Below, in pieces: positions 18,650 through 30,629 of a stretch of DNA of 52,462 nt. The notes under the pieces were generated by a model. That model was not told where the DNA came from. It searched no databases and saw only the letters and a list, made by a program, of their open reading frames with translations. The stretch is from Gracilinanus agilis (Eukaryota): positions 256,799,365 through 256,851,826 of the forward strand of contig NC_058133.1 of assembly GCF_016433145.1 (NCBI RefSeq), given 5' to 3'. Within the stretch, counting starts at the first letter, position 1. Each line of letters starts with the position of its first letter. Position numbers and translations under genes: made by a program.

Positions 18650-19760
18650 AAAGGCACCGTGGATAGTGTTGCTTTGGGTAGTAACTTGCATTCTCCCTAC
18701 AATACGGTTCCCACAAATACTCTAGCTAAAGAGGAGAGCTGCGCCTCGCTCTACCTTTCCAGCGACAGGGGGGGTGCTCCAGAGAAGGATGGCGCCAAGG
18801 CGCGAGGGATTATCCCAGAAGGGCCGCAGTGGCGGGGACACAATGGCGCCACGACCGCCATCTTGGGTCCTCCCCCTCCGCTCCCGGCCGCCCCCCTCCC
18901 CCCTGGGGGGCTCTTCCCTCCCGGGCGGGGCGGGAAAGGAGGCGGAAATAACGGCCCCGCAGGGGCCTGGAGGCCTGAGGACTGCTCTTGGCAGAGGCAT
19001 CAGGGGTTCCCTGCTGTCGAATGGCCTCAAAGAAGGACGGATGGATGTGGATAGAGGCCGTGGTCGCCGCTTACCTGAGCGGGGAAGAAATGCGTCTGGT
19101 GGCGGCAGCGGCGGCGACCGAGGAAAGCGGCCTCCACTTCCGGTCCCCGCGTTCCCTCTCCCCTTTTCCACCCCGCTCTCTTTCCAGGTGCCAATGCGCA
19201 GTCGCGGAGGACAGGAAGCGTGGCCCGAGGACCTCCTACGCCTTAACCGTCCCGCGCACTAGGGAGATGCCCTTTCGAAACGCCTGCCTGGATGTAAAAT
19301 ATTAATCTTCTCGCAGTTCCTCCGTTGCCGCTCTAATCAAAGGGTTTTGGAGAGATTTTCCAGTACTATTTTCTCTTTTTAGTGAACCTTTCCCTCGCCA
19401 CTATCCCGAACTCCCTTCCACTATTTCTCTTTTCAGTCAGGCTTGGTTAGGGCAATGCCCCTCGTTTGGAACGCAATGAATGGGACGCGGAAGCGGCGGC
19501 GCGTTCCCACGGGGTCCTATCGCGGCCCTGGTTGCCAAGGTGACCTAGGCATACTTTTGTTTAGGCTTTATCCTGGGCCTAAGCGCTGGGTGTGATTGCT
19601 GTGTGGCCGCGGGGCGGGAGGGGAACAGGGACTATGGATGGAGGAAAAGGAAGCTGGGTTGCAGGTCTGATAGAACAGGTAACTGGGTGTCCCTGCAGGA
19701 AGAAGGAAGTTGTCTTGCTGCCATTCCGACCGGGACCCGCAAAGGCCGCCCAGTGCAACC
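18650..19760. promoter_or_regulatory. DDX39B CpG-island promoter with non-coding exon 1 (about 19075-19145, minus strand)
   Basis: High CpG density; CAG|GTAAG donor at 19075/19074; ETS CCGGAAGTG 19135-19143; CCAAT 19191-19195; YY1 CCGCCATCTT 18855-18864; X-box-like GTTGCCAAGGTGAC 19531-19544. Confidence 0.8.
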
Positions 19761-20553
19761 AAGTCAGTAAACAAACATTTATTAAGCGCCTACTATTTCA
19801 GGCACTGTGGTTAAGTGCTAATAATGCCAAGAAAGAGAAAAACATGGTTCCTGCCCCCAGGAGGTCATAATATAATGGAGAAATTAACAAATGACTGTGT
19901 ACACACAAGATAGCTAGAGAACAAATAGAAGATCCTCAGACAAAGGCATAGGGCATGGGGGAGAAGACTAAGTCTTTAGGAAAGCCAACGAGGTACTGAG
20001 GAATGGTTAGGTCTTCACGACTGACCAGAATCTACACACACACATAAGGTCTGTGGTAGATGGGCCTACTTATGGATATCCTTGATTGATTTTCTATAAT
20101 AGTGACTAATATTCCTTTAAGTGCCTTAAAGTTTAAAAGGTATAGACGTCACTGCCTTGACACTGTCACAGAGCAAAGCCAGGTTAGTAGGCAATGGGGA
20201 AAAAGGGGCTATAGACTCTGTTCCCAGGAAGGGAGGCGAGTTTTAAGGATCCAAAGTTATGGATGGGGAGAGTAGATTCAGGTACTAGGCTTCCTCATTT
20301 TCCATTTCCCTTACTGGACTATAGAGCTGCTGCTGCTTTCAGTCCTGGTGTCCCCAATCCACAAAAACCTGCCCCTTCTGCCCCGGGTGGGGGGGGGGGC
20401 AAGGGTGAAGTCCAAATTCACCCTTGGAACACCATATGCGTGGAGACTGCTTTGAGATTCTACCAAAAAATGGTAACTCACTCCCAATGCTTCTAAGGCA
20501 AATAGCCAGCTCCCTAATTCAGTGTTAGTTGCCAGTTAAGATTTACCAGAGTA

Positions 20554-20766
20554 GGGGGCAGCCGGGTAGCTCAGTGGATTGATAGCCAGGCCTAGAGACG
20601 GGAGGTCCTAGCTTCAAATCTGACCTCAGATACTTCCCAGCTGTGTGACCCTGGGCAAGTCACTTGACCCCCATTGCCTACCCTTACCACTCTTCTGCCT
20701 TGGAGCCAATACACAGTACACAGTATTGGCTCCAAGACAGAAGGTAAGGGTTAAAAAAAAAAAAAA
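20554..20766 (+). mobile_element. SINE1_Mdo-like SINE with poly-A tail
   Basis: 16-bp TSD aagatttaccagagta at 20538-20553 and 20767-20782. Confidence 0.9.
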
Positions 20767-20799
20767 AAGATTTACCAGAGTATAGTTGTTAGAGGATAA

Positions 20800-21000
20800 T
20801 CTTAATCTATAATAATAATAACAAATGTTTATAAAGTACTGTGCTAAATGCTTTACAATTATTTGACAACAATTCTGGAAGGAAATTATCTCCATTTTTT
20901 AGAGATGAAGAAGATGGGGCAAAATGACTTGCCACAGCTAATAAGTTTTTGAGTACAGATTTGAATTTAGGTCTTCCTGACTCCAGGCCCACTTAATCTA
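20800..21000 (-). mobile_element. MIR-family SINE
   Basis: actgtgctaaatgctttaca...tccatttttagagatgaagaa...gacttgcc...gatttgaatttaggtcttcctgactcc. Confidence 0.6.
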
Positions 21001-22351
21001 TTGTATGATTTTTGTCTGTCAGAGACATATGAATATGTCAGGCACTTTTTGTACATCTCTTTCCTACCCTTATCAGTTATTGGGATGAGTTGCATAAACA
21101 AACTTTAGTATGAAACCAGATTTGAAGTATGATATAATGGAAAAATCAATAGATTTCGAGTAGGAGACAAATCCCAGTTCTGGCTGTATTTAAAGCTGTG
21201 TGAACTTGGAAAACTAATTTTCCCCTTCTGAGAATCGGAACATATAAAACAGTGTAGAAAATAAGATTAGATTAAATGATTGAAGTTTTCTTCCAAGTTC
21301 TAAGTCCTATGACTTCCATTATTTGCCCTAAACTTAAAATCATTCAAGTTCTAAAGATGCTTTATTCTAACAGTTCCAGATATGATAAATAATGAAGATG
21401 ATAGGGAAAGAAAAATGGGGTATTGTGAGGGAGATACTCCCTGAGATTCTCCAAAAAGAACTCTTACAAGTTTTTCAGACCTTATTTTATTGACATTTAC
21501 ATTGGTTTCTTTTAACAGTTGAGTAGAACCCAATAGGAAATTGAAGTGTGAGAGAAGGAAAATGGAAAAGGATGGAGGATATTCCCATAACAGCACATGA
21601 AATATAAGATGTTCCTCTATAGTTAAGATAGGCAATAGTAGGAGCCAAATAGGTCTCTTCCAAGAAATTTTGAGGGATAGGAGAAAAACGAAAGAAAATG
21701 GAGAAGTAAAGGAGATAAATAAAAAGTAAGGAGGAAATAGAAACCTTTGGAGCCATAGTAAGATCAATGGAACCATGGAGGTCAGCTAGTTTCATCATTG
21801 GTCACAGGAAGAAACCCAGACATGTGAAGGATAGTCATTTGAATAAAGTTATTAGGATTACTTAATTGAAACCAATTGGGGAGAGATTTTTACTTATCTG
21901 GGAAATATTTTATTAATAACTGATATGTAGCCTTTAGTACTTTATAAGGTTTGCAAAGCATTTTGCACATATCTCTTTTGATCCTCACTAGAAAACTTGT
22001 TAAGTAGGTACTATTTTTGTCTCCATTTTATAGATGAAGAAATTAAATAACTTGCCTTGCGGGTTACACAGACACTATTAAAGTATCTTAAGGCAGGCTG
22101 TCAAGGTCCAGGTTTTAAGATCACTGCAGGGTAAATTCAGATTCTGTGAAAAGGAGGCATCATTCTCAGGAAACTCAAAAGGTCCTGGTAGGAGTTATGG
22201 AGCTAAAGAAGATTTAGGGTTCCATATGGAAGAGTTATAGGATGACTCCTTGAGTTTCTGGGGAAATGATGGGTAAAATGGGATATGGCTGGAAGACAAG
22301 GTATGAGGTTCTGGGAAGGGGGGGGGGGGCGTTGTGACTGTTACATAATTC

Positions 22352-23454
22352 CTAGGCAGCAATCCGGTAGTTGGGATGAATGTAGGGCTTGATGTCACAG
22401 ACCAGGCCCAGGAGATGAGCCAAGACACGCTCACGACTGCGCTGCTGAGAGCTCTGCATGCCCTGTACCTGTCGACGTGTTGCCTGCTCCACCTCAGCTG
22501 ACAAGTTTCCCTGGGAGCCCATAGCCTGAGGTGGGGGTAGTAAAGGGGAGAAAGGGGTAGAAATGGGGGGGGGGACAAAGAAAAGGGTCCCAAAGTGTGA
22601 GATTGCCCAAGGAAGAGATAGAAAGCAGGATCAAGAAGAAAAAAGACCCAAATGTAGGGTCTCTTCCCTTGAATCCTTATGTATAGATGATGCACATTCT
22701 ATAGCTGTCCAGGCAACACAGAGACACACAACCTTCATTAAGACCTTACCCCATAACAACCCACAGACTGAATTCTCCATCAACTCCAATATTATCACTT
22801 TCGGTAGAAAGAGTACAATATCCCCCACCCCAGACCACTGTCATCTGTCACACAGAAAAAACCCCAAACATTGCCTCAAATATAATTTCCTTAATTACAA
22901 AAATGCTTTCCTTAGAAGCCCCCAGACTTCCCTCTATATCACAGAAATATTTGAATCGTCACATTAGAGTTCTCTTCACCCCCAATATTACCCTGATGCC
23001 CCCTTTCAATCTGAAATGCACCCCAAATCTTACCGCTTGCTGTTTGCTCTGGAATTCCTGTTCCCGTTCCCTACGGTATTGCTCTACCTCCATCTGAGCT
23101 TCTTCCTTGGCCTGCTTCAGACGACGAGCCTTCCCTGGAGTAAGGAAAGGGAAGAACAGCCCCCAAAAGGTAGTTAGAGAGCTCTTTGAGTAAGAAGAAT
23201 CCTTCTTGGTCACCCTGAGTTCAATCCCTGGTCTTACACATTTCTCCAAAGGAACCCTGACATTTAGGGCCTAGACTCCACCTCACATCCCTACCCCCAC
23301 CCTATAGCGGCTCCTCTTAATAATCTAAATGTCCATTCCTCTTTAATCCCTGTTCCCCGACAAGGTTCTCACTCTTTCTGGCATCCGCCACCTTCTCAGC
23401 CGCTCTTTTCTCAGCCTGCAGCAGCTGCTGGATGCCTTGGGATTGACTGGCCAT
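22352..23454 (-). CDS. ATP6V1G2: V-type proton ATPase subunit G2, 118 aa; exons 23373-23454, 23034-23134, 22352-22525
   Basis: MASQSQGIQQLLQAEKRAAEKVADARKR|KARRLKQAKEEAQMEVEQYRREREQEFQSKQQA|AMGSQGNLSAEVEQATRRQ...HPNYRIAA*; GT-AG junctions in phase. Confidence 0.98.
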
Positions 23455-24009
23455 CTCTCCTGGTAAGTGGTGATGCTACCAAAGGTACCAGCTTACTGCC
23501 ACTACCTCCACCCCCAATCACTAGCTCATCCAGCTTTTCCTTTTTCTCTCCGTTGGGTCTTAGTGTCCCCCTGCTCTCAGTTCCCTCTTCCCATCAATTC
23601 AGTTTAATCCTTTTATTCCTCCTCTCCCCTCACTAATTCCCTTGCTCTTGCAGTACCACCTGAGATCACCTGAGGGCAACAGAGACCAGATCATTGCCCA
23701 CCAGTGTCTCCTCCCCTCCCCCCCTCGCTCCCCGCACCCCCAATTGGCCCCAGCCTGATTTCCCATCTTTCTAGTTTTTCTCAGCAAGACTTCTACCTCG
23801 ATTGTGTCTCCATTCTAGGCCTTAGTGAGTAGGAGTTTCTATGGAATGTAAAAGAGGAGATAATGGAGATTGGTAGCCATGAGCCTGAAGTTCAGAAAGG
23901 TCAAAGAATGGAACTAAAAGGTAGAGATCATCACTCCCATGGACTGGAAATAGACAACAGATTATTTTTCTCTAAATCTCAGCAGCTCTTCTCCCCATAA
24001 TATCCAGCT

Positions 24010-24620
24010 TTAAGGTTTGCAAAATGACTTACAAATATCTCATTTTATCCTTATAAAAAACTCAGGTTTGTGCTATTATCCCCATTTCATAGATGAGGAA
24101 ACTGAGGCACAAAGAAATTACATGACTTGTCCAGAATCACACAGCTAGTTCTTGTGAATACAGCACGGGTCCTGGAAATTCCTGCATTAAAATCTGACCT
24201 TAGACATAGCTATGTGACCTTGGGCAAGTCACTTAGGGGAAGGGAAGGGATAACACACTTACTCTGTATCAGGCACTACACTAAATACTTTAGTAATTTT
24301 ACATATATCTCATTGATCCTCACAACAATCCTGGGAGGTACGTGCTGTCATCCCTCATTTTACAGATGAGAAAACTGAGACAAAGATTAAATGACTTGCC
24401 TAGGATCATACAGTCAGCTGCCTATAGGATGAAGGCTATGAACTAGGTATTCCTGATTTCACTGCTCTATGCACTGCACCACCTACTGCCACTCTACCTG
24501 TGCCTCAGTTTCCTCATCTGTAAAATGGGGATAATCACAGCTTCCTACCAAGGTTGTTGTGAGGATAAAAAATGAGAAATTTTTAAAGCACTTTGCAAAC
24601 CTTAAAGCGCTAAATAAATT
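24010..24620. mobile_element. Cluster of MIR/CORE-SINE fragments in both orientations
   Basis: Repeated atagatgaggaaactgaggcac / ttttacagatgagaaaactgag / cctcagtttcctcatctgtaaaatgggg cores. Confidence 0.6.
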
Positions 24621-25016
24621 CTTGTGGTTAACCGTTATGTCCTTGAGGCCAAGTCTGAACTCCAGATCCAGCGCTTGATCTCTCTGCTGAGCCCCCTCGC
24701 CGCCTCTCCTTCCTCTCTTCTGTCTTCATTTCCATTTCTTTTCCTTCGGTTTGTATTTCTGGCTCCACATCTTTCCTTCGGCTCCACCTCCTGCCAGCCC
24801 TTTCAGTGTCGCCTTCTCCCTTGATCTGTTGTGTTTCTACGGTTTTTTTCCCTACTCCTACAGCTATCTTTCTTTCTTATCTTATCTTATTCTTATCTTA
24901 TCTTTCTCTAGATCCTCCCCACCTCCGGGAAAGAAGGACTAGGGGTAAAGGAGGTCCACTTGAAATCTCCTTTTCCAGTTCCCTCCAGCGGGAACCATAA
25001 ACATCCCTTCCTCCAG

Positions 25017-25045
25017 CCCCTGCCCTGCCCTGCCCTACCCTACCC
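25017..25045. repeat. (CCCTR)n pentamer repeat, G-quadruplex/i-motif capable
   Basis: cccc tgccc tgccc tgccc taccc taccc: six C-tracts with 2-nt loops. Confidence 0.7.
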
Positions 25046-25129
25046 TGTCCAGTCCCCATCCTGTCCCATCCCATTTCGTTCAGTTCAGAGGAACCTTTCT
25101 CTCACGCCTCGAGTTGTCCCTAGAAGGCC

Positions 25130-25260
25130 GAATCTTGATAGTTGTCGCCTTCCGCCCTCTCCCCTGGCTCATTTCCGGTTTGCTTCCGCCCTTCTTCCTT
25201 CGGACACCTGGACGCCTCGAGGTGGGGCTGCATCTCTGTTTATTGGTTGCAAGAGGTCTT
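25130..25260 (+). promoter_or_regulatory. Probable NFKBIL1 promoter / TSS region
   Basis: Local CpG enrichment with several TTCCG (ETS-type) and CCGCCC motifs about 1.2 kb upstream of exon 2. Exon 1 is not pinned down. Confidence 0.45.
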
Positions 25261-25575
25261 CACTTCCCTCCCGCCACAGACTATCTTTTGGAGAGCTTGG
25301 GGTTACCTCCGGCCTCATGTCCCAGGCCATGCTGATCTGTGCAAAACGACAAAGGACCTGGCTACTTTAGTAGCCGCGGGGCCTGAGAGCTGGGCTTGGT
25401 TTTTTCATCCATCTTGTGATTGGGGTTGGGCTAGATCAATGTGTCTTAGTTGTGAGTGTCTGTGGTGAATGCTATCGGCTGTTTGATGCAGCGAATGACC
25501 CCTCTTAGACTAAACCTTTTATATCATTTAAGAAAAGACCAAATTTCAAAATAAGAAATGTCATTTTCTCCAACG

Positions 25576-25850
25576 CCAGGGAGCTTGCTTTCATCTTGGA
25601 CCCTGACAGCAGGTTACCACTGTTGGACGCTTTCGAAGCTGCCCTAGAAGGGCTCCACTCATCACTAGATAGTGCACCTAGCAGGGCAGTATTCCCTGGT
25701 AGGTCAGGGCAGCCTCAAGGGTTACAGGGTAGGGACATTAGGGCAGGCAAAGCCTTGGTGGAGGGATGGTGGCTCCCTAGCACCTACCTCCAACCTGAGG
25801 TGTCACCGAAGGAAGGTCTAGACCCTGCTCATCTGCAGATAGATAATTTA
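25576..25850 (-). pseudogene. Inverted, decayed duplicate of NFKBIL1 exon 2 and the start of intron 2
   Basis: Minus strand translates RV*TFLR*HLRLEVGAREPPSLHQ vs KAKSLFQRHPRLNIDAGEPPPLHR. Hand alignment gives 58/87 identical nt ungapped, plus an exact 16-mer gggaatactgccctgc (25681-25696 vs 26593-26608) and tccaagatgaaa(g/a)caag shared with intron 2 (26697-26713). Confidence 0.8.
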
Positions 25851-26370
25851 GATATGTAGGCAGTCATCAAACTATGTGATTATAAAAGTCCAAATTCTGC
25901 AGCAGCCCAGTATTCATGTCTTCAAAATCCTTTTTTTAGTTGTACTGTCTGAATATGACTAATGAGGAAATATTTTTTGCATGACTTCATATGTATAATG
26001 AGAATTGTCTTTTCAAAGGGTTAGGGAGGGGCTGAAGGGAGTGAGAATATTTGGAATTCAAAATAGAAATGAAATTTAAAATATATATAAAATGAAAAAA
26101 TTGTGCCTTTTGGCCCAAAGGACCATAAACAATTTTATCTTCTCTCCAGATTTGCATATCTACTTACTCCAATACCCTATTTAAAAGATACTTGAGTTTT
26201 GAAGAGAAGATAGTTTTTATTTCAAGATTTAAAGTGGAAGGTAGAACTATATAATAGGGAGAAAAAAAGGTATGGAAAAGCAGAGAAAATGAAAGGGACA
26301 ACATGGAGCAAATGTTCTCTTCTGATTCTAATTGCCTTGTTTTCTCTCTTTTCTCAGCCTAAGAGCCATC

Positions 26371-29229
26371 ATGAGTTCTTCCTCTCGCCAACGACATAGG
26401 GAGAGACGTTTCCGAAAATATCTGTCTGTTGGACAGCTGAGCAAGGCTAAGTCCCTCTTTCAACGCCACCCAAGGCTGAATATAGATGCTGGAGAACCAC
26501 CACCACTCCATCGAGCTTGTTCCCGTAAAGATGCCCCTGCCTTTCATTTGCTACTCCATCTTGGGGCTGACCCCACTCACCAGGACTGCCATGGGAATAC
26601 TGCCCTGCATGCTGCTGCCCAACAGGGTCCTAGTGGTGAGTCCAACCTTACAGGATAGTTTTGAAAGTGTTAGACAGTAGTTGCCCTATCTCGGAATCCA
26701 AGATGAAAACAAGACCTTTGGGATGCCAGATATTTTCTTGGTCATCAGAATCAATTTCTTCAGATATAAAATGGGAATGATAATAATTACATTACCTACT
26801 TTATAGGGTTGTTGTGAAGGTCAAAATGGATAGTTGTTATAATTAGGTAGCACAGTAGAGTACCCTTCCTGAAGTGAGGAAGACTCATCTTCCTGAATTC
26901 AAATCTGGCTTCAGACAATGACCCTGGGCAAGTCACTTAACCCCATTTGCCTTAGTCTTCTCATCAGTAAAATGACCAGTGGCAAACCACTCCAGTGTCT
27001 CTGCAAAGAAAACCCCAAATGGGGTCACAAAGAGCCAGACGCAATTGAAAATACCACTTAAGAACCAGAAAAGGTAGTTGTAAACCCTAACTCATGATAA
27101 ATGTATGTGTGTTTGTCTATACATACCTATATGTATCAAAAATGGATGTGTATATACACATATAGATCTGTGTGCATAGATGTGAATGTATGCATACATA
27201 TATACATACATATTAGATATATACATATGTATCTAAGCTGGCACTAAAATGAGATTTTTACATCCATTCATTTACTACTCTGTTTCCCTATAATATGGCA
27301 AAAAAATTTTCTAATCTGCTTTTTCTGTCCAGAATGATAACTATTTTTGTATATTTCTTTTCCGATTGGTGACATCCCTCTCCTCAGATCTCTCTAGGGG
27401 CTTCTCATTGCCCCCTAGAGAATAAAGTTCAGACACCTTAGCCTTACATTCCAAAGTTTCCTCAAGTTGACTTTAATTTACTTTTTCCTAACCTTATCTT
27501 CCTTTGTTCACCTACCTACTTGGCTCTACTGTAGCCAAATTTGTCTGCTGATTATTTCCTATACATTGGGATGTACACTACTGCCTTTGTATCTCATGAT
27601 GTTCCACTTATTTGGAATACTTACCCAAGTATCTTGAGTCTTATCCTTCCTCTAGTGCTCATCGAAAGTCATTGCTCTTATAGGATTGTAGACTTAGAAT
27701 TGGATGGGACCTCAGAGTCCATCTAGTTCAGCCCCCTCATTAAAAATTAAATTTAAAATTACAGATGATAAAACTGAGGAACAGAAAGATGTACAGGGTG
27801 GCACATCCACTTTGAGGCAATATTTGAACCTGGTTCTTCCTGACTACAAGTCTAGTTCTCTTTCTGCTATGCTCTGTTGATTCTTCCAGGAAGCTCTTTT
27901 TCTGTGAATCAGTCATATGGAACTTAGCATATACAATCTCAGAGTGACATTTTAAAATGTAATTGGCTTCTCCGGTAAGACTATAAGACCCTTGGCAAGA
28001 TTGTGTCTTAGATCTATTTGTATCCACAATCTTAGATCTATTTGTATCCCCACTGCCCACCATCTGGCTCATGATGGTAGTCTTCTGAGTGAGAATTGGT
28101 ACCCAAATGGATAATTTTCTCTTTTATTGCTCCCCCCATTATTTAATTTCTCTAGAGCTTGGATATCAACTGGCAATATTCTTATAATTTGAGGTGATAG
28201 CCACAGCAAATAACAGAAGCTGACCCTGATCTTTTGCCCTCTGACCCCTGCCAACAGCCTACAAGGACTTCTTCGTACCTCTGATGACACGGTATCCCAC
28301 TGCCGTGAAGATGAAAAACAAGCAAGGAGAGACCCCTGAGGAGCTTCTGGGCTGGGAAATGCCCCCAGAGTCATTTTTAGAAATGGAGGAAGAAAAAGAA
28401 AAGGCTGACAGAGAAAAAAAATGGAGGCAAAAACTTCAGGACGAGCTGGAGGATGAGTGGCAAGAAATGCTGGGGAGGTTTGAGGGTAAGGACTAACGTC
28501 CTCTAGATACTTTATTGATTACTGTACCTCCCCCACTTTCCTTACTGTTTAGCTACTCCATGCTGGTTTCCATCATTCTCATTTTTTCAGTCCCCATCTG
28601 TCTCTTGATTTCCTTCCTCCTGGCTTCATTGTTTTTCTTCTCATTGTTCCTTAGATGATGAGGACACCCCAGAGCCTGAGTCTTTCTCTGCTTGGACTGA
28701 ACGTTTGGCCCGAGAACATGCTCAGAAACAACGACAGCAACAAGCAACAGAAAGAGCCCAGCATCCAAAATGTCCATCCACCTCATACCACAGCTGGCAG
28801 CAGCAGGAGAAGGAGCGTTGTCTCTTCCAAGAGCGAGCCCAGAAAAAGGAAGAAGAACTGAGAGAAAGCCGAGCCAAGAAGGCCCAGGAAACCAGAGGGC
28901 ATTGTTGGGGAGACCCCACTAGGACAAAGCTCAAGGGAGACTTCACCAGGAGTGGGGACAGACTCTGGTGCTTTGAAGATATACCCTGGCCCTGCCTTGG
29001 AGGAAGGGACCCTGAGGCAATGGCAGCAGCCCTGGTGGCCAGGGGCCCCCCATCCACAGATAGGATAGCCCTAAGGAAGTACTTAAGGACCCAGCAGGTT
29101 CAATGGCATCCTGACCGATTCCTGCAGAGATTTGGGGGCCAAATTGAAACTAGGGAAAGAAAAAAAGTAATGGAGATTGTTACAGCTTTGTCTCAGGCCC
29201 TTAATCGCCATGCAGAAAGCCTGAAGTGA
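26371..29229 (+). CDS. NFKBIL1: NF-kappaB inhibitor-like protein 1 (IkBL), about 355 aa from the exon-2 ATG; coding exons 26371-26635, 28258-28485, 28655-29229
   Basis: MSSSSRQRHRERRFRKYLSVG...ankyrin-type PPPLHRAC / GADPTHQDCHGNTALHAAA ... WRQKLQDELEDEW ... QQVQWHPDRFLQRF ... SQALNRHAESLK*; phase-1 GT-AG junctions. Confidence 0.95.
26845..27050 (+). mobile_element. MAR1-like SINE in NFKBIL1 intron 2
   Basis: gaagactcatcttcctgaattcaaatc...gcaaaccactccagtgtctctgcaaagaaaaccccaaatggggtcacaaagag. Confidence 0.75.
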
Positions 29230-29344
29230 CCCAGGCCCGTGTTTTTGTTTTTTGTTTTTTTTTTCAAAGATAATTATTTTATTACCTATTCTTCAGGTAT
29301 CACCTCAGAAACAATCTAATTATATACAAAAATTTTGAATGTTG

Positions 29345-29350
29345 AATAAA
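29345..29350 (+). terminator. NFKBIL1 poly(A) signal AATAAA
   Basis: First AATAAA after the stop codon. Confidence 0.6.
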
Positions 29351-30629
29351 TGCTAGTTGATAAAAATATTATATAGCTGCTGACATGGGAAAATTTGGGG
29401 GGAAATTAAAGCAAATTAATACTACAGGCTCAATGTAAGCAAAAGGATTTGGGGGACAAGGACAACACATGGGGCCCATAATGAGGAGGAGATGGAATAT
29501 AGGGATAAAAAAGGGGTGGGAACAGTAGCAAAGGATGAGGCTTGAATGAGGACAGGCTGTGGGTTAGTGGTAAAGTTGAGCTGGAACAGTTGTGGGAGTC
29601 TGCTACCACTAGACCTCTTCTCTTCCTATTTATTTCCTGATAAAACATAGTTCCCCATCTTACTCGAATCTCTCCTCTGCCTTTTTCCATCTCTGTGGTT
29701 TCTAACCCCCATGACACCTCCCTCTCATCTACTAAGCCTACAGTTTCTACATGCCAGAGATATACATGTGTGTGTGATGTGCCCTTGGCCTGTGATAATC
29801 ACTTCATCCTGGCCAACAGGATCCAGGTCCAGAGGCCTTAATTTGTCCCCCAAATTTCACATCTCTCTTCCTTTCCTCCCTTCTAGACCAAGTGCCTATC
29901 ATCTTAGTCCAGTTTGTGGCTGGAGAAACAAACTTAATGTGAATAGGGCAAAAAGGGAACAAAACTGTGATCTCTTCTCCAGCTCCCCAGCTAGAACCAC
30001 ATCCTCCTCCCCCTTTCCTCCCTCCCTCCAGGGCTTTCCCTTTGCTGAGTCACTAGGATTTGAGGTGGGGGGCAGTTGAGGTTCGAAGACCCATGAGGAG
30101 ATGTAGGACAGAGTTGGGGGGAGCCAAGGGCAGAGAGGGAAGCAGCCCTTCTGTGGGGGAGTGCAATTTCGATTGCTAAAAATAACATCAGGGGAAGGAA
30201 GAGGAAAGGGCCAAATTATGTAACCTGGGTTGTCTGTTCTTGGGTAACCAGAGATCCACACCCCAGGATTGGGCCCAACCTTGCAAGGCTCCCAACTGGT
30301 AACTAAGCATCCGATAGACCAGGCTTCTCAAGGAACTTAAGCATCTGTACCTTGGAAATAGACCAACAAACCTTCTAACCCCTACTGCCTTTCAGGGAAT
30401 TGTCCTGGTTCTTCCTCTCAACTCTTCTCACCCTCCTTCTTCCCTGCTTTACTCCTGACATCCATTTGACAATCCAAATCAGGATTCTGATTTCCCAGTC
30501 TCAGCTTCATCTCCTGAAGGATCTCTTCCTCCATCCTCGGGGATCTAGGAACTTTTGGTCTTTTCCCCTGGTTCATAATCTCTGGGGTGATGTGGGCCCA
30601 GTCTATACTTTATAGATAATTATCTCCTC

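Follow-up and report, generated by a model that had tools for sequence, protein, structure and literature searches.

The stretch of DNA analysed here (the window; 52,462 nt of the Gracilinanus agilis genome) carries NFKBIL1 on the plus strand and, head to head with it, ATP6V1G2 on the minus strand, with the ATG of ATP6V1G2 at 23454. The first coding exon of NFKBIL1 is the homologue of human exon 2 and is called exon 2 in this study. It occupies 26358-26635, with the acceptor AG at 26356-26357, the ATG at 26371, and the donor GTGAGT at 26636-26641, and 26371-26634 translates to residues 1-88 of G. agilis NFKBIL1. Exon 3 lies at 28258-28486, where 28260-28484 encodes residues 90-164, and the coding part of exon 4, including the stop codon, lies at 28655-29229, where 28657-29226 encodes residues 166-355. 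Compared exon by exon, the three coding exons match the 355-aa NFKBIL1 protein of G. agilis exactly. Wallaby NFKBIL1 is predicted to have three exons, compared to four in human (Deakin et al., 2006; PMC1654159), and this difference of one exon indicates that exon 2 is the first coding exon in marsupials.

Upstream of exon 2, the minus strand of 25584-25849 carries a decayed inverted copy (a pseudo-exon) of part of exon 2 and the intron that follows it. In a local blastn alignment (+1/-1), this strand aligns with 26415-26713 over 300 columns, with 188 identical columns and 35 gap columns, corresponding to an identity of 63% over all columns and 70% over ungapped columns. The alignment score is 54, with E values of 4e-19 in the pairwise comparison and 2e-17 against the whole window. 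The scores of 200 dinucleotide shuffles are 12.1 ± 1.6 with a maximum of 18, so the score of the copy and its parent is 26 SD above this background, and a second aligner (PairwiseAligner) returned identical alignment ends. A significant self-alignment of the minus strand with 26416-26721 had been proposed in the initial annotation, and it is borne out here with slightly narrower ends. Chance similarity or an assembly artefact has a negligible probability as the source of the match: both the E value against the window and the distance from the shuffles speak against chance, 63% identity is too low for the arms to stem from mis-joined reads or repeat collapse, and 97% of the words sampled from the stretch occur in one sequencing run, possibly that of the source sample. 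A blastn search of the whole window found no third copy of the segment, which is present as two arms only.

The copy covers about four fifths of the ATG-bearing exon and 78 nt of the following intron. Its exon-derived part (25663-25849) corresponds to codons 16-89, and its intron-derived part (25584-25662) corresponds to the first 78 nt of intron 2; on the parent side, the segment runs from codon 16 to the end of exon 2 (26415-26635) and continues through nucleotides 1-78 of intron 2 (26636-26713). The initial annotation was right that intron 2 is included, but the included length is about 78 nt rather than about 85 nt. The longest ungapped block between the arms is 108 nt with 70 matches, which fits the 58 matches in 87 ungapped positions counted earlier. 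The exact 16-mer described earlier is also present, at 25681-25696 and 26593-26608, and was seen again in an inverted-repeat scan; a perfect run of at least 16 nt is expected by chance with P = 0.21 at such identity, so the 16-mer is not special. At the exon end, the copy reads ctagtg/atgagt and the parent reads ctagtg/gtgagt, as had been read in both arms, and the GT of the old donor is now AT. The two arms are separated by an AT-rich spacer of 565 nt (25850-26414), which contains a repeat fragment together with the acceptor and initial 57 nt of exon 2. The repeat fragment, at 25952-26055, is an interspersed repeat with another copy at 32333-32225 (E = 1e-6), and because it sits in the spacer, the original spacer was probably shorter. 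No arm homology was found within the spacer.

The sequence of the copy is extensively decayed, in keeping with the stops and deletions noted earlier. Three in-frame stops are found at the positions of parent codons 26449, 26464, and 26551. The exon-derived part retains 135 matches, with 55 mismatches and 34 bases lost in eight deletions; five of the eight deletions break the frame, and all eight gaps in this part are deletions on the side of the copy. The intron-derived part has 51 matches, 24 mismatches, and one inserted base, with an identity of 68%. The differences between copy and parent are evenly spread over the three codon positions (21/64, 16/60, and 17/63), which is expected if coding selection never acted on the copy and most of the changes occurred there. 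A plus-strand ORF of 87 codons over the copy (25596-25859) showed no relatives in a word search, a weak test given its length and word limits, and Rfam covariance models gave no match with E ≤ 1 in 25300-26900.

The exon and intron sequences are contiguous in the copy, and the alignment passes through the donor into intron 2, indicating that the copy was made at the DNA level. With two significant reverse-complement arms, and not being an interspersed repeat, it is a DNA-level inverted duplication, which agrees with the earlier reading of a genomic duplication and not a retrocopy. We also considered a processed retrocopy, which is ruled out by the retained intron together with the lack of an A/T run and of flanking direct repeats at 25584 or 25849. 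A different RNA-mediated route, in which reverse transcription of part of an unspliced NFKBIL1 pre-mRNA (for example, in a LINE event) led to a backward insertion into the gene itself, would accommodate the intron, and a repeat fragment with an A-rich tail does lie about 100 nt away in the spacer (25952-26105). This route is nevertheless very unlikely, as the copy and the repeat fragment are not contiguous, the copy, read in the sense direction, has no A-run at its 3' end (no T-run lies on the plus strand to the left of 25584), and flanking direct repeats are missing here as well.

Both ends of the copy are sharp, with no extension beyond 26414 or 26713. Past the intron end, 26714-26830 compared to 25460-25583 scores 12 (shuffles, 10.2 ± 1.7), and past the exon end, 26290-26414 compared to 25850-25980 scores 7 (shuffles, 8.8 ± 1.5). 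These results bear on the earlier suggestion that the copy is the relic of a larger inverted paralogue, that is, the last piece of a whole-gene or multi-exon NFKBIL1 duplicate of which the rest has decayed or been deleted. Inverted segmental duplications are plausible in the MHC in general, and a large genomic duplicate would include intron sequence, as the copy does. However, neither end extension rises above the shuffle range, a tblastn search with full NFKBIL1 proteins found no relic of exon 3 or 4 along the whole minus strand of the window, a sensitive blastn comparison of 26714-29600 with 20000-25583 returned SINE pieces only, and ATP6V1G2 fills the space 2 kb upstream. The suggestion therefore did not hold up, and we consider a larger paralogue to be highly improbable.

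We mapped the upstream exons of NFKBIL1 by tblastn, using the predicted RefSeq models of the sister genus Monodelphis, in which five isoforms are annotated for M. domestica. A first exon used by isoforms X1 and X3 maps to 19634-19764/19807 on the plus strand (93% amino acid identity, E = 2e-29) and adjoins the DDX39B CpG island, an alternative exon used by X2 maps to 18789-18996 (89-92%, E = 4e-10), and an exon used by X1 and X4 maps to 23365-23463 (88-94%, E about 1e-11), antisense over exon 1 of ATP6V1G2. Splice sites are kept at these exons, except for the donor of X2. The exon at 23365-23463 has an acceptor AG at 23363-23364 and a donor CTG/GTAAGT at 23464, and the exon starting at 19634 has the donors CAA/GTCAGT at 19765 and TG/GTTAAG at 19808; the junction codon TG+C encodes Cys, the residue present in the Monodelphis proteins. 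The X2 exon is the only upstream exon without a canonical donor, with GC in place of GT after it. By homology, the upstream exons of X1 to X4 all join the acceptor at 26358, so the intron before exon 2 would extend at least over 23464-26357 and would hold the copy. The supposition of the initial annotation that the copy sits within the intron preceding exon 2 is thus supported by homology for transcripts from the distal promoters. The same alignments suggest that didelphid NFKBIL1 transcripts can start at the DDX39B CpG island and cross the whole of ATP6V1G2 in antisense, and that one such exon is, as mapped, the antisense of ATP6V1G2 coding exon 1. The N-terminal extensions of the Monodelphis isoforms are probably translated 5' leader rather than real protein.

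Other transcripts may begin closer to exon 2. The wombat isoform X3 reads through the exon 2 acceptor from about 26289, suggesting that some marsupial transcripts, which would not contain the arm, may start immediately upstream of exon 2 or retain the intron there. The region 26249-26400 may accordingly represent a proximal promoter or a site of intron retention. A TATA-like word is found at 26251-26257. A 36-codon ORF begins with the ATG at 26289 and runs over the main ATG in a different frame; the counterpart of this ATG in wombat X3 shares the main frame and is annotated as the start. Searches for exon 1 within 24200-26357 with the eutherian exon 1 peptide and the M. domestica X2 N-terminus gave nothing significant, and a frameshift-tolerant alignment over the same interval scored 38, compared to 41.6 ± 7.4 for shuffled peptides. 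Homology also gives no support to a candidate promoter or exon 1 at 25100-25450, a CpG-richer region with CCAAT- and ETS-like words. The CpG-richer stretch at 25100-25400, with 22 CpG per kb, adjoins the copy.

The divergence of the two arms gives an approximate age. Their K2P distance, 0.375 over exon-derived and 0.438 over intron-derived sequence, corresponds to roughly 0.22-0.27 substitutions per site per lineage. Neutral rates in mammals are approximately a few 1e-9 per year, and at such rates, the copy would be several tens of millions of years old, up to about 100 million years. To place it among lineages, we aligned the exon 2 peptide of 12 species to the codons of the copy. Four states derived in marsupials are shared by the copy (S at 26440, E at 26494, N at 26596, and S at 26632), where the outgroup states are V/G, Q, D, and D, respectively. 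At three other sites, which are derived in both didelphids, it is nearer to the older, non-didelphid states: at 26527, it has CCT, a single step away from His as encoded in koala, wombat, and eutherians but three from the AAA of opossums; at 26479, it has GAG, where opossums have AAT and the others have Asp; and at 26521, it has GCC, where G. agilis has TCC and the others have Ala. Two sites give the opposite signal (AAT versus AAA at 26416, and CAG at 26434), and the latter is a CpG transition, which can recur. These codon states indicate that the copy is younger than the marsupial/eutherian split but older than several opossum-specific changes, and the most economical reading of these few sites is that the copy arose on or before the didelphid stem. 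Such an origin predicts that the copy is present in Monodelphis too, and the copy would then serve as a dated marker that should be common to didelphid opossums.

A pre-mRNA that contains both arms could pair with itself. Cofolding of the arms gives a predicted gain of -95.7 kcal/mol, compared to -14.0 ± 5.7 kcal/mol for 60 shuffles, and 202 intermolecular pairs, compared to a shuffle mean of 55. The minimum free energy fold has 205 inter-arm pairs in both a 1.4-kb context (25450-26850) and a 3.1-kb context (24200-27300), and in the partition function, the exon 2 donor region (26630-26641) pairs with 25657-25668 on the plus strand as a 12-bp helix with a probability of about 1.0. As predicted in silico, therefore, the pre-mRNA has an arm able to pair imperfectly with exon 2 and its 5' splice site, as the initial annotation had proposed; these figures are equilibrium predictions for naked RNA and do not describe the structure in vivo. 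In the plus-strand RNA, the alignment columns comprise 186 Watson-Crick pairs, 23 G:U pairs, 25 A:C mismatches, 31 transversion mismatches, and 35 gaps. As a within-genome proxy for selection on pairing, G:U is no commoner than A:C, indicating that pairing has not been preferentially preserved. The intron-derived part of the copy (25584-25662) is complementary to 26636-26713, and the two bracket exon 2. Inverted SINE/MIR-like pieces at 24313-24409 and 26786-26975, complementary by up to 87% over 30 nt, also flank exon 2, and such pieces would compete with the exon-derived arm for pairing. Inverted pieces in both flanking introns are the usual geometry for exon circularisation.

The predicted duplex raises the question of whether the copy is a working long-range RNA element, in which the arm in distal-promoter transcripts would base-pair with exon 2, including the 5' splice site, and would tune inclusion of the exon, create an ADAR substrate over coding sequence, or favour back-splicing of exon 2. 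The position of the arm in the preceding intron, the strength of the predicted duplex and its persistence in the 3.1-kb context, the 12-bp helix placed exactly on the donor, and the circular-RNA-favouring pairing of 25584-25662 with 26636-26713 across exon 2 would all suit such an element. Long-range pairings are also known in general to obstruct the splice sites that they cover and to be enriched in A-to-I sites (PMC8052449). In human genes, however, complementary regions overlapping active splice sites are depleted (PMC8052449), so a working clamp on a constitutive donor would be unusual. The lack of a G:U excess (23 versus 25 A:C) and the eight deletions that interrupt the duplex also argue against the element, as does its longest perfect helix, which at 16 bp is within chance at this identity (P = 0.21). 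Furthermore, all annotated isoforms of G. agilis and M. domestica include exon 2, and no annotated isoform of these didelphids skips it. On this balance, we regard a working element as unlikely. A more specific form, in which the copy would have been retained in American opossums as a promoter-dependent switch, is less likely still: the arm would be present only in transcripts that begin at the distal promoters, which DDX39B and ATP6V1G2 share, and there it would clamp the exon 2 5' splice site or recruit ADAR to the ankyrin-coding sequence. If this were true, promoter choice would set the splicing or recoding of NFKBIL1, an immune regulator.

The copy is an old local inverted duplicate of exon 2 and its donor that has probably decayed as neutral intronic DNA. 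A local DNA-level inverted duplication copied about 300 bp, comprising the last four fifths of the ATG exon and 78 nt of intron, and set the copy backwards about 0.57 kb upstream, by homology inside the intron preceding the parent exon. The likely cause would be a replication template switch or fold-back repair. Tens of millions of years ago, a marsupial lineage, most likely the stem of American opossums, would have undergone this event, and neutral decay of the copy would have followed. As a by-product, pre-mRNAs from the distal promoters would carry two arms and thus a potential imperfect duplex of about 200 bp over the exon 2 5' splice site. Two considerations weigh against a neutral relic, the neutrality of which is judged from one genome: a very stable duplex that covers a constitutive exon's sole donor might be expected to be lost by selection if it were neither tolerated nor used, and similarity that is still detectable after so long could reflect some constraint.

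We compared the arrangement with several known systems. The copy resembles local inverted micro-duplications of the fold-back or template-switch type, which leave pseudo-exons in introns, in that it is a DNA-level copy of an exon and its contiguous intron, is inverted, lies less than 1 kb from its parent, and has sharp ends, stops, and deletions. The NFKBIL1 copy is old and not a recent structural variant, its fold-back or template-switch origin is putative, and so much decay leaves no junction microhomology to be read. Editing complementary sequences of ADAR substrates, such as that of the GluA2 Q/R site, lie downstream of the exon and are conserved, and editing has been shown for them. The NFKBIL1 arm is like them in being an intronic stretch complementary to a coding exon in the same pre-mRNA with a predicted imperfect duplex; unlike the classical examples, it lies upstream of the exon, and it is known here from sequence and folding. 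The bracketing of exon 2 by 25584-25662 and 26636-26713 is similar to that of circularising inverted repeats, for example, SINE pairs, but most of the NFKBIL1 arm pairs with the exon itself and not with the far intron. The arms also resemble the PCCRs of Kalmykova et al. (2021; PMC8052449), which are complementary regions hundreds of nucleotides apart near splice sites. Conservation across species is what defines PCCRs, and active splice sites are depleted of them, whereas the NFKBIL1 pair lies over the donor in use at a constitutive exon and is known from one genome. The copy therefore stands as a well-documented old intragenic inverted micro-duplication, and for annotation, the pseudo-exon should not be called as part of the gene. 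If the duplex forms in vivo, the copy would be a natural exon-derived antisense arm that clamps the sole donor of the exon carrying the start codon in an MHC class III regulator.

Several minor observations were made along the stretch. The interval 24070-24127 is SINE/MIR-like and was omitted from the later analyses, in which local work began at 24200 or the interval was masked with N. At 25627-25638, two CpGs survive in the intron-derived sequence of the copy at places where the parent (26660-26671) now has CpA/TpG. In addition, about 0.30 of the words sampled from 24600-29300 occur in three small sequencing runs of 52-80 million letters, a value close to the share of exons there, and these three runs may represent RNA or long-read cDNA from the same project.
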